Source: Hyaloraphidium curvatum SAG 235-1 (lineage: Eukaryota > Fungi > Monoblepharomycota). From it: a DNA stretch of 64,000 bases. The notes under the pieces were generated by a model. That model saw nothing but the letters and a program-made list of their open reading frames with translations. It ran no database searches and was not told the origin of the DNA. Of this stretch, positions 31,371 to 46,558 are shown one piece after another. The stretch lies in contig JAIVFI010000024.1 in assembly GCA_025558095.1 (NCBI GenBank), positions 372,001 to 436,000 of the forward strand. The letters run 5' to 3'. Position 1 is the first letter of the stretch, and each line of letters opens with the position of its first letter. A program made the translations under genes and the position numbers.

Positions 31371-31647
31371 GGTCGCGCCCTTTGGAGGAGGAGGGGTGGT
31401 GGGGCCGCGGTCACGGTTGTTTGCCGCGCTTCCGGTGCGCGAGCGCCCTGCAAGCGAAGGCCGGAGTAGCTGGAGAGGTACGAGGCTCCGTTCGCAAGCG
31501 GGAAGAGAGCGCTGTCGGCTCGCGGCCCTCCGAAATTGGAGCGCGTCGTTCACCAGCGGCTAGGGATCACGTCGGCGCGGCGGTCATCACTCCCCTCCAA
31601 ATCAAAGTCGATTCACTCAGGGAGACCGCTGTCTAGGCGGCTACTCC

Positions 31648-31993
31648 AAGCTCGCGCAGTACAACAAGCGCTCGACCATCTCGTCGCGCGAGATCCAGAC
31701 CTCGGTGCGCCTGATCCTGCCCGGCGAGCTCGCCAAGCACGCCGTGTCGGAGGGCACCAAGGCCGTCACCAAGTTCACCAGCTCTAAGTAGAGCAGCGTG
31801 GCTCGGCCTCGAACTCTTTGGCGGGCACCCGCTCCCCGGCGTATCTAAACGCCACCACCCTCTTCTCGTTGTTCATGTACATGTGGTTGAATGAATGGTC
31901 TCCTTCTCTACTGCTCCGCGCCTCGAGTCTTCGAGTCCTCGAGCCCACCAGGTCCACTGCCCGGCGCGGGTGCTCTCCACCGGGCTTTGGCAG
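31648..31993 (+). pseudogene. 5'-truncated histone H2B fragment plus 3' UTR (inverted copy of about 35507-35852)
   Basis: Near-identical to the reverse complement of H2B ([18 protein letters not shown]...TSSK*); no start codon or N-terminal half. Confidence 0.92.
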
Positions 31994-32093
31994 CTGCTTG
32001 GCGCGCGTACGGGAGGCGTGGCGATCGGCCAAAAGCAGTTCTCAAATCGCGCACTTCCTTCCATAACATGTGCTGGATTGAGCCGTATTCCTT

Positions 32094-32200
32094 CGTTCAC
32101 CGGTCGGGATCGCCGTTCACCTGCTGGTGACCATGCTAGGGGAGCTTCGTTCACCGGGCGAGGTTCCGTTCACCGGGCGAGATCACCGTTCACCGGCCGG
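32094..32200. repeat. Short tandem array, five CGTTCACC cores, about 20-bp unit
   Basis: CGTTCACC at 32094, 32114, 32148, 32167 and 32187. Confidence 0.85.
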
Positions 32201-32274
32201 TGATCTAGGCGGATCTTCGCCAAGGGTCGTCGACGTCACCAAGAAGTTATCACTCAGACTCAGATAGGTCACCA

Positions 32275-34611
<2,337 letters not shown>

Positions 34612-35640
34612 GTGCGGGACGAAGGGATGGATCTGTGGAGCTGGTGCTGGGAAGCAGCTCCTTTATACCTTGTCGGCGCGGAAGGCCTCGCTGAACCTGA
34701 ACCTATCTGAACCTGACCCTGCGAGCACAGGCAATGTACCATTATACACTGTGGAACAATGTAATGTACAATTTCCCAGATCTTCCCTTGGCTCGTCGTT
34801 GGCGTTCTGCTTTGGTTCCTTGACCGCTTTGATATGCCTGGCGAGCAAGCCCCGCGCCACGGACAGGCGGATACCTTTGAAAGAGGAGCAAGCAGCGGAC
34901 GAGCACACAACTGGGGTGGTGATTGGCGAGGCGATCTTCAACGACCTGTTTCGAGAGGGGGACGATGGAGCACCGGGACCTGGTTCCTTGCAGGGAACAT
35001 CTTTTGTTCATCATACAACGCTCCGCTTTTGTTCATCATACAGCGAGAAGCGTCCGAGCCACCCGAGGTAATGGATAGCGTTGCCGCCGCGGATCTGAAC
35101 CTTGAAGGTGCACGAGCATTCGGCCCGCGGTCTCGCAGCCGAAAAAGATCAAGACTCGCCGATCTGCGACTGCCTCGGCAAAGCATCGTCGATTTAAAAC
35201 GAGGACATAGGCTTGAGCAGCCCGCCCCGGTCGCCGCTACCGGCGAGTTGGGAATGTTAGGTCGACGCCTCCGGACCACCGCGAAAGGGACAACGGATCT
35301 CCGCGCGCCAAAGCGCCCAAAAATCCGAAATTCACGCGGATGGCAGAGCCAGCATGTCGAACAAGCAGCGGGGGCTTTAGGGTTAGGTTGTGGGCTCCGT
35401 TGGCCTTGTCGAGCCCGGCGTCATTGGGGCGCCTCCATGAGTCCCTCACCACTCCGCTACGCGCCGCCAAGCGGGCCCGAGAACAGAGGTTGGAAAATGC
35501 AGCACTCTGCCAAAGACCGGTGGAGAGCACCCGCGCCGGGCAGTGGACCTGGTGGGCTCGAGGACTCGAAGACTCGAGGCGCGGAGCAGTAGAGAAGGAG
35601 ACCATTCATTCAACCACATGTACATGAACAACGAGAAGAG

Positions 35641-35664
35641 GGTGGTGGCGTTTAGATACGCCGG
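35641..35664 (-). promoter_or_regulatory. Conserved histone 3' UTR stem-loop element (H2B)
   Basis: CCGGCGTATCTAAACGCCACCACC, 44 nt after the H2B stop; identical element in the H2A 3' UTR. Confidence 0.8.
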
Positions 35665-35708: not shown

Positions 35709-36259
35709 CTACTTAGAGCTGGTGAACTTGGTGACGGCCTTGGTGCCCTCCGACACGGCGTGCTTGGCGAGCTCGCCGGGCAGGATCAGGCGCACCGAGG
35801 TCTGGATCTCGCGCGACGAGATGGTCGAGCGCTTGTTGTACTGCGCGAGCTTCGAGGCCTCGACGGCGACGCGCTCGAAGATGTCGTTGACGAACGAGTT
35901 GAGGATCGACATGGCCTTGTTCGAGATACCGGTGTCGGGGTGGACCTGCTTCAGCACCTTGTAGACTGGAGGGCGAGGCGGAGGTGAGCGGAGGCTCGCG
36001 GGGGGCAGATCCGGGCGACGCACTGTAGGTGGAGTAGGTCTCGCGCCGCACGCGCCGCTTCTTGGTCTTGCCCTCGGCCGACTTCTTCTTGGCGGGGGCC
36101 TTGCCGGCGGGCTTCTTGGTGGTCTGGAGGGCGGCGGGTGAGCGGGGACGGGGGGGAGTCGCGGGGGGCACGCACCTTGGCCGCGGGGGCCTTGGTGGCG
36201 GGGGCCTTGGCGGCCTCGGCGCCTTCGGCAGCGGGCTCAGCAGCCTTCTTGGGGGCCAT
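35709..36259 (-). CDS. HTB1: Histone H2B (2 introns)
   Basis: MAPKKAAE...RRETYSTY|IYK-type exon junction, [24 protein letters not shown]...AVTKFTSSK. Confidence 0.98.
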
Positions 36260-36492
36260 GTCGACGAGTGTGCTACGGCGGTGTGCGGGCAGCGGTTGCT
36301 GCTCGGGCTTGGGGGGTATGCGATTATAAGGCGCCCCTGCCGTACGGTGCCCGCTTTTCGCGCGGCCGAGTTCGTAAAGGCCGTTGGCCGCGCCGGCCCC
36401 CCGCGACCGCGCGCACTATATAGCCCGGCGCCCACCCCTCCCACCGCCAACCGCCGCAGCACCGAACCTCCGTCGCAGCAGCAAACGCAACC
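36260..36492. promoter_or_regulatory. Bidirectional H2A/H2B promoter with a TATA-like element on each strand and an E2F/SCB-like site
   Basis: TTATAA at about 36324-36329, TATATA at about 36417-36422, TTTTCGCGCG at 36355-36364. Confidence 0.75.
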
Positions 36493-37059
<567 letters not shown>

Positions 37060-37104: not shown

Positions 37105-37128
37105 CCGGCGTATCTAAACGCCACCACC
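37105..37128 (+). promoter_or_regulatory. Conserved histone 3' UTR stem-loop element (H2A)
   Basis: CCGGCGTATCTAAACGCCACCACC, 45 nt after the H2A stop. Confidence 0.8.
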
Positions 37129-37892
37129 AGCACCTCTGGCTTGTAAATGCTCTAATTCAATGGCCTGAACTCCACGTCTCTGCGCTCCGCGCTTCCTCCG
37201 TCCCTGGTTGCCCACCGTCCTTGTCCCTCCCGTTGCGCACTCCTGCGACATGACTTGCTCTGCACCCGGCTCATGCTCCGGATGGATGGCTGTTCGCGCG
37301 ATGTTGACCGGGCGACACGTCCTCGGTACGTCGATCCTCGGGCGCCTCCTGCTGCGGAGGCTTAGCAGGAAAGACCGCCAGGTGGCATCCACTCGAGCTC
37401 GGGGCTGATGCGCGCTCTCGCGAGCTCTCTGGTCCAGGTGAACGCCGTTATGATCCGAGGTGTGTCGTGCCAAGGGGGGTTCGGCTGGAAGGCAAGGCAA
37501 TGGTGAGGCTGGACGGTGCACGGGTTGGTAAAGACGGGGACGCCGACGCTCCGGTAAAGCAATTTAGACATGTGGCCGAGAATCAAAGATCGTAGACGTG
37601 TTGCGGAACACCCTTTGCGGCAGTCGCAGCGCCAAGGACGGCGGGCCGATGGCTGGTAATGCTCTCGACAGTCCGTGAAAGATGACATTGCTGACGCCAG
37701 GGCCGTAGCGAATTAGTCGTTGCGCAACGTGCGGCGGGGTTCCGCCTCCTGGAACCATCGCCCGAGCCCTTCGGGTATGCAGCGATGCGGGGCCGGCCGT
37801 GGAGCCGGGTCGGCGGCGCCGCGGCGGTCTGGATGGATTCATCTTCTGCTCCTCGCTTCGGTATCGGGAAACGCAGGACAAGGAGCCACAGT

Positions 37893-45894: not shown

Positions 45895-46558
45895 ATGTCG
45901 ACTGCCGTTGTCTTGCCTCCTCCGCCCGCCGTCGGCCAGCACCCGCCCGCCGCGCCGCTCGCCTCGGAGCAGCTGCAGGCTCTGAAGGCCGAGCTCACGG
46001 CCGGCGGCAACCGCACGCGGATCCAGGTCTCGGACGGCCGCGTCTTCTTCGGCCACTTCATGTGCGTCGACCGCGACCGCAACGTTGTTCTCGGAGGCTC
46101 GGAGGAGTACCGCGGAGGTGCGTATCGCGGCGTGTGGATGCTGCGGGTGGCATCGGCCGAACTGCGGACGGGCCAGGCGGAGTTCCCCGAGGGTGAACGC
46201 CGTCTGACCCGATGGAAGTGCTTTAATACTTCTATTATGCTACTGTCCGGGGATTTCGCGGGCCGATGGCTGCAGGGCCGTTGCCTATGGAGGTTTTCTT
46301 CCCCGTCTCCCACTTGCTGATCTTTCACCTCCCCTCGCCCCATCCCCGGCCTGAAAACCATCCTCGCCTCCATGATGCAACTTTTTTGCCATGCTTGGAC
46401 AACAGACCAGAGGAGATTCGTTGGGCTGGTCATGGTGGGGCTATCATCGCTTTGCGGTGAATGAACTGGTTCCTGACTCGTTACCCTCGCGTCAGATTCC
46501 CGGAAAGCACATCATGAGCGTAGCAGTGCCAGCGGAGGACACTGCTTTGGGCATTTGA
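45895..46558 (+). CDS. NAA38: LSM-domain NatC auxiliary subunit Naa38/Mak31 (introns about 46118-46405 and 46435-46495)
   Basis: RIQVSDGRVFFGHFMCVDRDRNVVLGGSEEY|DQRRFVGLVM|IPGKHIMSV. Confidence 0.82.

Follow-up and report, generated by a model that had tools for sequence, protein, structure and literature searches.

The window analysed here is a stretch of 64,000 nucleotides, positions 372001-436000 of contig C24 in the 55-contig, 31.9-Mb assembly of Hyaloraphidium curvatum, which NCBI taxonomy places in the Fungi (Monoblepharomycota). It holds canonical H2A and H2B genes in divergent orientation, each followed in its 3' untranslated region (UTR) by the same short hairpin, together with partial duplicates of both genes. 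In window coordinates, these features are as follows:

36494-37059 (+): canonical H2A gene of four exons and three short introns, with a Pfam Histone match
35709-36260 (-): canonical H2B gene with introns, divergently paired with H2A, with a Pfam Histone match
37105-37128 (+): histone stem-loop in the H2A 3' UTR, core at 37107-37122, identified by its fold, by Rfam Histone3 (15.7 bits) and by our own covariance model (46.2 bits)
35641-35664 (-): histone stem-loop in the H2B 3' UTR, core at 35647-35662, identified by its fold and by our own covariance model (49.6 bits)
31644-31993 (+): inverted duplicate of the H2B 3' end and UTR (99% identity), found by repeat search, with a hairpin copy at 31836-31859
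32261-32931 (-): inverted duplicate of the H2A 3' half, UTR and downstream flank, found by repeat search, with a hairpin copy at 32563-32586

The H2A protein ends in ...GKKGASQEV*, featuring the SQE motif of the H2A.X type, and over its whole length the last exon shares 98% identity with an NCBI protein that carries the label Hyaloraphidium curvatum. A preliminary description of this DNA had correctly called both genes intron-containing and had reported that an identical 24-mer, CCGGCGTATCTAAACGCCACCACC, follows their stops. Indeed, the stops (37057-37059, +, for H2A; 35709-35711, -, for H2B) are separated from exact copies by 45 and 44 nt, respectively, and comparing the two UTRs confirmed that nothing outside the 24-mer aligns; in 100 shuffles, chance occurrences of the 24-mer in the window numbered zero. 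The core at the H2A site reads GGCGU-AUCUAA-ACGCC, with CC on its 5' side and ACCACC on its 3' side. Folding reproduced the 5-bp stem that had been described, pairing GGCGU with ACGCC around the 6-nt loop AUCUAA; the energy was -7.9 kcal/mol whatever the context (z of about -3).

Only two copies in the window had been described at first; both are real, but two more exact copies of the 24-mer had been missed, at 31836-31859 (+) and 32563-32586 (-). Since these are located inside the 99 to 100% identical duplicates, they do not constitute independent evidence. The H2A duplicate matches its source at 100% over 542 nt (32390-32931) and at 88% thereafter (32261-32389). Both fragments are cut off within coding regions and are arranged tail-to-tail, at a distance of 3.5 to 4.9 kb to the intact H2A and H2B genes. 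They could have arisen by a recent rearrangement, have been captured by a mobile element or be an artefact of the assembly. Between the two fragments, at 32080-32200, CGTTCACC(G/T)G is repeated no fewer than five times, and a similar GGTTCACGGGGTTCTGGG repeat is found beside a copy of an H3 fragment on contig C10 (L026:1060-1190, minus strand). Both could represent the subterminal repeats of a transposon bearing histone 3' ends.

Throughout the 31.9-Mb genome, the 16-nt core is present in 11 exact copies and three copies with one mismatch, all in sense orientation past a histone stop. The copies form minus/plus pairs on contigs C7, C10 (two clusters), C11 and C24, coincide with Pfam Histone matches, and follow H2A (...SQEV*), H2B, H3 (...RGERS*) or H4 (...GFGG*) genes or fragments of such genes. 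Several of them, like two of the four copies in the window, are recent duplicates. The data set comprises nine independent contexts, which cover all four core classes and whose UTRs are otherwise unalignable; the stem begins 36 to 61 nt after the stop, and the one block common to the nine contexts is CC-GGCGU(A/C)U(C/U)UAAACGCC-A(C/A)... A covariance model that we trained on the nine independent copies returned exactly 14 sites genome-wide, at 44.7 to 50.9 bits, while the next match among the 150 of 3,056 candidates that were scored reached 22 bits with an E-value of at least 0.2. The preliminary description had raised the question of whether the core is restricted to the 3' flanks of histone genes and whether it accompanies H3 and H4 in addition to H2A and H2B; both are the case, with 14/14 sites located after canonical histone genes or their fragments. 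A pattern scan of metagenomes for the hairpin gave 12 matches, all of which lie by chance within bacterial genes, for example that of SecA.

The stem is invariant within the H. curvatum genome, including a G-C pair at stem position 2 in all 14 copies. Five Watson-Crick pairs surround an inner UCUA or UUUA, with U as the first and third loop base in every copy, and the sixth stem position is an A.A or C.A mismatch. On the 3' side, an A is invariant, ACC is found in most copies and the C at +6 is again invariant. The 5' flank is rich in C and U and ends in an invariant CC; the A-rich CCAAA flank of the metazoan type was not encountered.

The covariance-model scan of the genome, together with inspection of gene flanks, revealed no hairpin after a solitary H3 gene, a CenH3-like gene, an H2A variant, other histone-fold genes or H1, and the same scan revealed none after an H3-like gene located in a low-GC region. 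The hairpin-free H2A variant has no SQE tail. The solitary, hairpin-free H3 (L019, G000:C11:629649-630190) shares both its N terminus and its C terminus with the clustered H3; it is a candidate for a replication-independent fungal H3. By analogy, this pattern of presence and absence would mirror the division of animal histones into replication-dependent and replacement types. A perfect hairpin accompanied by a UGUA/AAUUGAUU block was also found on the minus strand of contig C10 (L026:925-1060, G000:C10:156724-156860) and in its duplicate L027. All that precedes it of H3 is a remnant of the last microexon (...SLRGERS*), and no H3 body can be recognised upstream; this site is another histone 3'-end fragment.

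Among Rfam families, Histone3 (RF00032) was the best match to the H2A copy (15.7 bits, E of 0.89 in 1.8 kb), and the alignment matches the GG, the U-C-U-A loop, the CC and the ACCA. Scoring with this model, which the preliminary description had proposed, stayed under its gathering score of 34 bits; no Rfam family was matched at its gathering threshold. When Rfam was run over 33 kb, the Histone3 matches were lost through E-value scaling. Hairpins of relatives also stay below the Histone3 gathering score, with 22.6 bits for H2B of Gonapodya and 21.5 bits for H2B of L077, a metagenome contig described below. According to a preprint by Zhao, Bond and Ni Leathlobhair (bioRxiv 10.64898/2026.10.14.759114, 16 Oct 2026), models trained on metazoan sequences are less sensitive outside animals.

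Given that the stem does not vary inside the H. curvatum genome, we turned to relatives for evidence of RNA structure, using the loci of chytrid H2A entries that an H2A search had returned and choosing their hairpins by eye. Gonapodya prolifera features GGAAUU-UUUA-AAUUCC-ACC at the same place after H2A and GGUUUU-UAUA-AAAACC-ACC after H2B. A GC-rich, intron-bearing close relative (L080) has GGCGUA-CACA-UACGCC, and a further eukaryote (L077/L078) carries GGUGUU-UUUA-AACACC after H2A and H2B alike, while Gorgonomyces and Gaertneriomyces hold looser versions of the hairpin at the same place. The L077/L078 sequences are JGI metagenome contigs (Ga0453977_0043236 and Ga0453918_0127109) of low GC content with intronless, divergently paired H2A and H2B genes; relative to the H. 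curvatum core, their canonical hairpin, GGUGUUUUUAAACACC, has one pair exchanged in a compensatory manner and the top pair restored. In a cross-species alignment of 11 rows, 93.9% of the cells were paired, a value inflated by the choice of hairpins by eye, and compensatory changes were found in 4/6 pairs; stem position 2 was G-C in 11/11 rows. The only unpaired cells belong to the sixth pair of H. curvatum (A.A or C.A), which is a real pair in the relatives (A-U in L080, U-A in L077 and Gonapodya). Covariation in these 11 rows, with the relatives' hairpins picked by eye, reached 0.54; shuffles gave 0.20 (0/500), and sliding the pairing partner gave 0.08 at most. The compensatory stem changes that the preliminary description had hoped to find in related fungi are present in relatives such as Gonapodya.

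The protein that would be expected to recognise such an element is encoded on the same contig: a match to SLBP_RNA_bind (PF15247) lies at C24:320213-320468, 51.5 kb before the start of the window. Searched one by one, its two exons scored 48 and 57 bits (cut-off, 27), exon B alone scoring 53.7 bits. Exons A (...LEQRQKQIDYGKNTAGYERYTKMVPK) and B (...RKRGDPQTPDKYASYSKRAWDGLVRVWRRKLHAWDPP...) are colinear with residues 12-37 and 39-77 of the RNA-binding domain (RBD) of Drosophila SLBP, as captured in PDB entries 4TUW, 4TUX and 4TV0 (Drosophila), with 4L8R and with human SLBP. The preliminary description had considered a divergent SLBP; the gene is there, as a single copy, but its RBD is well conserved, with the motifs TPxK, YSKRxWD [(K/R)R-x-W-D] and LHxWDPP intact. 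The exons thus retain the threonine of TPxK, LHxWDPP and the arginine whose counterpart contacts the guanine at the second stem position, roles that are reported from the 4L8R/4QOZ work. All atlas neighbours of the protein are, without exception, SLBP clusters; its nearest named relatives are those of the chytrids Gaertneriomyces, Gonapodya and Spizellomyces, and public databases already label chytrid SLBP entries as hairpin-binding proteins.

The tail of this SLBP holds two E(E/D)GEI motifs, one of them straight after the RBD (L017:1740-1760 and L017:2505-2530, on G000:C24). The first is kept in two environmental relatives of about 89% identity (P0121, P0122) and missing from the SLBPs of Gonapodya, Spizellomyces and Gaertneriomyces. 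Another stretch of the tail, ...NWADDADEEVDW..., resembles the DWxxxEE motif by which animal SLBP binds SLIP1. In animals, motifs of the E(E/D)GEI type link FLASH to ARS2. It is tempting to speculate that the SLBP of the Hyaloraphidium lineage took over the adaptor role of animal FLASH, with E(E/D)GEI recruiting ARS2 and the cap-binding complex to the hairpin and thereby allowing SLBP-directed, U7-independent 3' ends on hairpin-terminated or short-tailed transcripts, but we regard this scenario as a long shot.

Animal histone mRNAs end 4 to 5 nt past the stem and carry no poly(A) tail, and the U7-type cleavage that creates these ends uses a purine-rich histone downstream element (HDE) 10 to 20 nt after the cleavage site. 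Counterparts of this machinery were searched for in H. curvatum. Among 16 Sm-fold loci (PF01423, E of 1 or less), none was a candidate for Lsm10 or Lsm11, although a divergent, intron-split Lsm11 could escape such a search; comparing the 16 loci by eye with human proteins, we take them to be Sm B/D1/D2/D3/E/F/G, Lsm1-8 and an NAA38-like protein, which leaves none spare. A Sm-fold exon within the window itself (46006-46119, +; RIQVSDGRVFFGHFMCVDRDRNVVLGGSEEY) resembles NAA38/LSMD1, an auxiliary subunit of NatC, rather than Lsm10 or Lsm11. No match to U7 snRNA (RF00066) was found among the 65 of 1,415 candidates that were scored, and no purine-rich HDE is shared downstream of the hairpins in the nine contexts, which agrees with the preliminary description in this regard.

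Two other blocks were considered as HDEs and rejected. TTGAAT(T/G)RAT is not purine-rich and is missing in some contexts, and similar A-rich/UGUA blocks follow CenH3 and other genes. TCCCCGTCCAGAGTCC was discarded because it occurs in both orientations: exact copies are found only about 70 to 75 nt past the hairpins of H2A on C7 (G000:C7:186021-186036, minus strand) and of H4 on C11 (C11:452939-452954, plus strand), and a copy with two mismatches follows H2B on C7 in reverse orientation (C7:187588-187603, minus strand). Looser blocks resembling CTGTTCCCGTCC are present after most histone genes. Being independent of orientation, TCCCCGTCCAGAGTCC probably functions as DNA, for instance as a terminator or a site bound by a factor.

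Past both hairpins of the intact pair, the window holds what may be ordinary poly(A) signals:

37142-37159 (+): UGUA (37142-37145) and a block of A-rich hexamers, putative poly(A) signal 20 to 37 nt after the H2A hairpin
35604-35624 (-): UGUA (35621-35624) and UUGAAUGAAU (35604-35613), putative poly(A) signal 23 to 43 nt after the H2B hairpin

The same arrangement, with UGUA located 9 to 23 nt past the hairpin and A-rich hexamers such as AAUGAA or AAUUGA behind it, is found in seven of the nine contexts. In the first 200 nt downstream of the stops of unrelated genes, UGUA is likewise enriched about fourfold (1.0 compared to 0.24, nine genes), and CenH3 is trailed by a block of this style as well. 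The UGUA/A-rich block is putatively a poly(A) signal of the general type. In two other early-diverging fungi, Allomyces and Catenaria, poly(A) tails downstream of histone stem-loops are reported in the preprint cited above (10.64898/2026.10.14.759114).

What we observe is an element that is exclusive to canonical histone genes, whose stem covaries across taxa and which coexists with an SLBP of intact RBD. We consider it likely, with a probability of roughly 0.8, that the hairpin is a genuine histone-mRNA stem-loop of the animal/protist type, which follows every canonical core-histone gene and is accompanied by a co-encoded SLBP. In such a system, the hairpin would be transcribed within the 3' UTR of each canonical, divergently paired H2A, H2B, H3 and H4 gene and the RNA would fold into a GG-closed stem with a U-rich loop and an ACC flank. 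SLBP most likely binds this hairpin, and core-histone mRNAs would thereby share one post-transcriptional handle through which processing, stability or translation could be tied to DNA replication. The interpretation of the hairpin as a histone mRNA element, already put forward in the preliminary description, has gained from the checks proposed there, namely the confinement of the core, its presence after H3 and H4, its counterparts in relatives and the SLBP gene. Some points argue against it: the Rfam score of 15.7 bits compared to 34, the mismatched sixth pair and a 5' flank that is C-rich rather than A-rich.

A separate question is where the transcripts end. Introns disfavour stem-loop processing in animals, and the H. 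curvatum genes contain them; this, together with the Lsm10/11, U7 and HDE searches that returned no candidate, the UGUA/A-rich blocks and the poly(A) tails of Allomyces and Catenaria, makes an internal 3'-UTR hairpin on polyadenylated mRNAs the likeliest configuration. It seems somewhat more probable than the opposite, then, that an animal-type U7 snRNP does not cleave directly past the hairpin and that the general machinery would instead cleave and polyadenylate about 40 to 80 nt further on, at the UGUA/A-rich signal. The resulting state would be the one termed 'SLBP-SL-PAS' for early-diverging fungi, and its three components, SLBP, stem-loop and putative downstream poly(A) signal at the same loci, are all present. 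The conserved ACC..CC 3' flank counts against polyadenylation, as it would suit cleavage just past the hairpin.

This flank is also an argument for a fully animal-type arrangement, in which the hairpin would form the very 3' end of a non-polyadenylated histone mRNA, generated by a U7-snRNP-like or another SLBP-directed cleavage a few nucleotides past the stem, with the UGUA/A-rich block serving as a back-up only. The constraint on the flank (A invariant, ACC in most copies, C invariant at +6), the full conservation of the SLBP RBD, a hairpin sequence that is invariant over four gene classes and the E(E/D)GEI motifs in the SLBP tail, of the kind that connects FLASH to ARS2 in animals, would all fit such an arrangement. 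However, all 16 Sm-fold loci are assigned without any being left for Lsm10/11, no U7 match was found among the 65 of 1,415 candidates scored, the nine contexts have no common purine-rich HDE, all genes have introns, and related fungi carry poly(A) past the stem-loop, so that we deem animal-type ends unlikely, if still worth keeping in mind.

Alternatively, the block might act in DNA as an imperfect palindrome, bound for example by a dimeric transcription or termination factor, instead of as an RNA hairpin. The core is nearly palindromic, and the orientation-independent TCCCCGTCCAGAGTCC after several histone genes indicates that DNA-level sites exist in these flanks. Yet 14/14 copies are in sense orientation, the flanks are asymmetric (CC... 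and ...ACC) and the genome encodes a dedicated hairpin-binding protein; covariation of the stem bases across taxa while their sequence changes would by itself argue against a DNA site, which we therefore hold to be very improbable. That the identity is a functionless by-product of recent duplication, gene conversion or a mobile element, as the recently duplicated copies (two of four in the window, several in the genome) and the C10 copy behind a mere H3 last-exon remnant might suggest, has next to no probability and is already effectively refuted by data across classes and species: the flanks of the nine contexts are unalignable, the block is common to four unrelated gene classes and absent elsewhere, and other genera hold the same architecture at the same place.

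To our knowledge, textbooks portray fungi as polyadenylating their histone mRNAs and as having no SLBP/stem-loop system. The preliminary description had likewise considered the system to be absent from fungi, a view that is superseded by the preprint 10.64898/2026.10.14.759114. Because the phenomenon is established there, the system in early-diverging fungi is already known, and H. curvatum is a further, unusually complete example that adds no new principle; its value lies in the clean example and in the details. H. curvatum represents an intact SLBP/stem-loop system in a chytrid-grade fungus, and it is unusually clean in that a near-invariant hairpin is found on canonical genes only, one SLBP gene is present and U7-specific proteins were undetected in our search. 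These features make it well suited to address a question that the preprint leaves open, namely what role SLBP and the hairpin play without U7 machinery and with a poly(A) signal following. The details that it adds are the mismatch at the top pair, the C-rich 5' flank and the EEGEI motifs in the SLBP tail.

Compared to the metazoan stem-loop (RF00032) and SLBP (PF15247), H. curvatum features the same 16-nt hairpin a few tens of nucleotides past the stop in all four core classes, with the same GG/CC closing, the same G-C pair at position 2, U at inner-loop positions 1 and 3 and an ACC 3' flank. Variant histone genes are devoid of the hairpin in both, and the SLBP RBD motifs are intact in H. curvatum. 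In contrast to the 6-bp stem and 4-nt loop of metazoans, its A.A or C.A top position results in 5 bp and a 6-nt loop, its 5' flank is C-rich instead of CCAAA, and its Rfam score (15.7) stays below the gathering score (34). Moreover, its genes contain introns, its H1 is hairpin-free and past the hairpin there is a poly(A)-type signal, whereas a purine-rich HDE, Lsm10/11 and U7 were not found in our searches.

Outside animals, histone stem-loops have been described in protists (Davila Lopez and Samuelsson 2008, cited in 10.64898/2026.10.14.759114) and in the green alga Chlamydomonas (Fabry 1995, cited in PMC13525598). H. curvatum shares with them the divergent histone pairs, the 3' GG...CC hairpin and an SLBP homologue, but it belongs to the Fungi and differs in details of the loop and top pair. 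The closest comparison is with other early-diverging fungi. For Cryptomycota, Blastocladiomycota and Chytridiomycota, the preprint by Zhao and colleagues (10.64898/2026.10.14.759114) documents orthologues of SLBP along with stem-loops at histone genes. In its account, U7 factors are sparse, stem-loop and poly(A) are combined in one state ('SLBP-SL-PAS'), and retention among chytrids is heterogeneous and only partial. Hyaloraphidium and the monoblepharids are not named in its main text, and E(E/D)GEI motifs like those in the SLBP tail of the Hyaloraphidium lineage are not discussed in it. H. curvatum has exactly the SLBP-SL-PAS configuration, that is, SLBP, stem-loop and putative poly(A) signal, and, in contrast to the partly retaining chytrids of the preprint, its retention is complete, with a 16-mer that is nearly invariant over the canonical genes.
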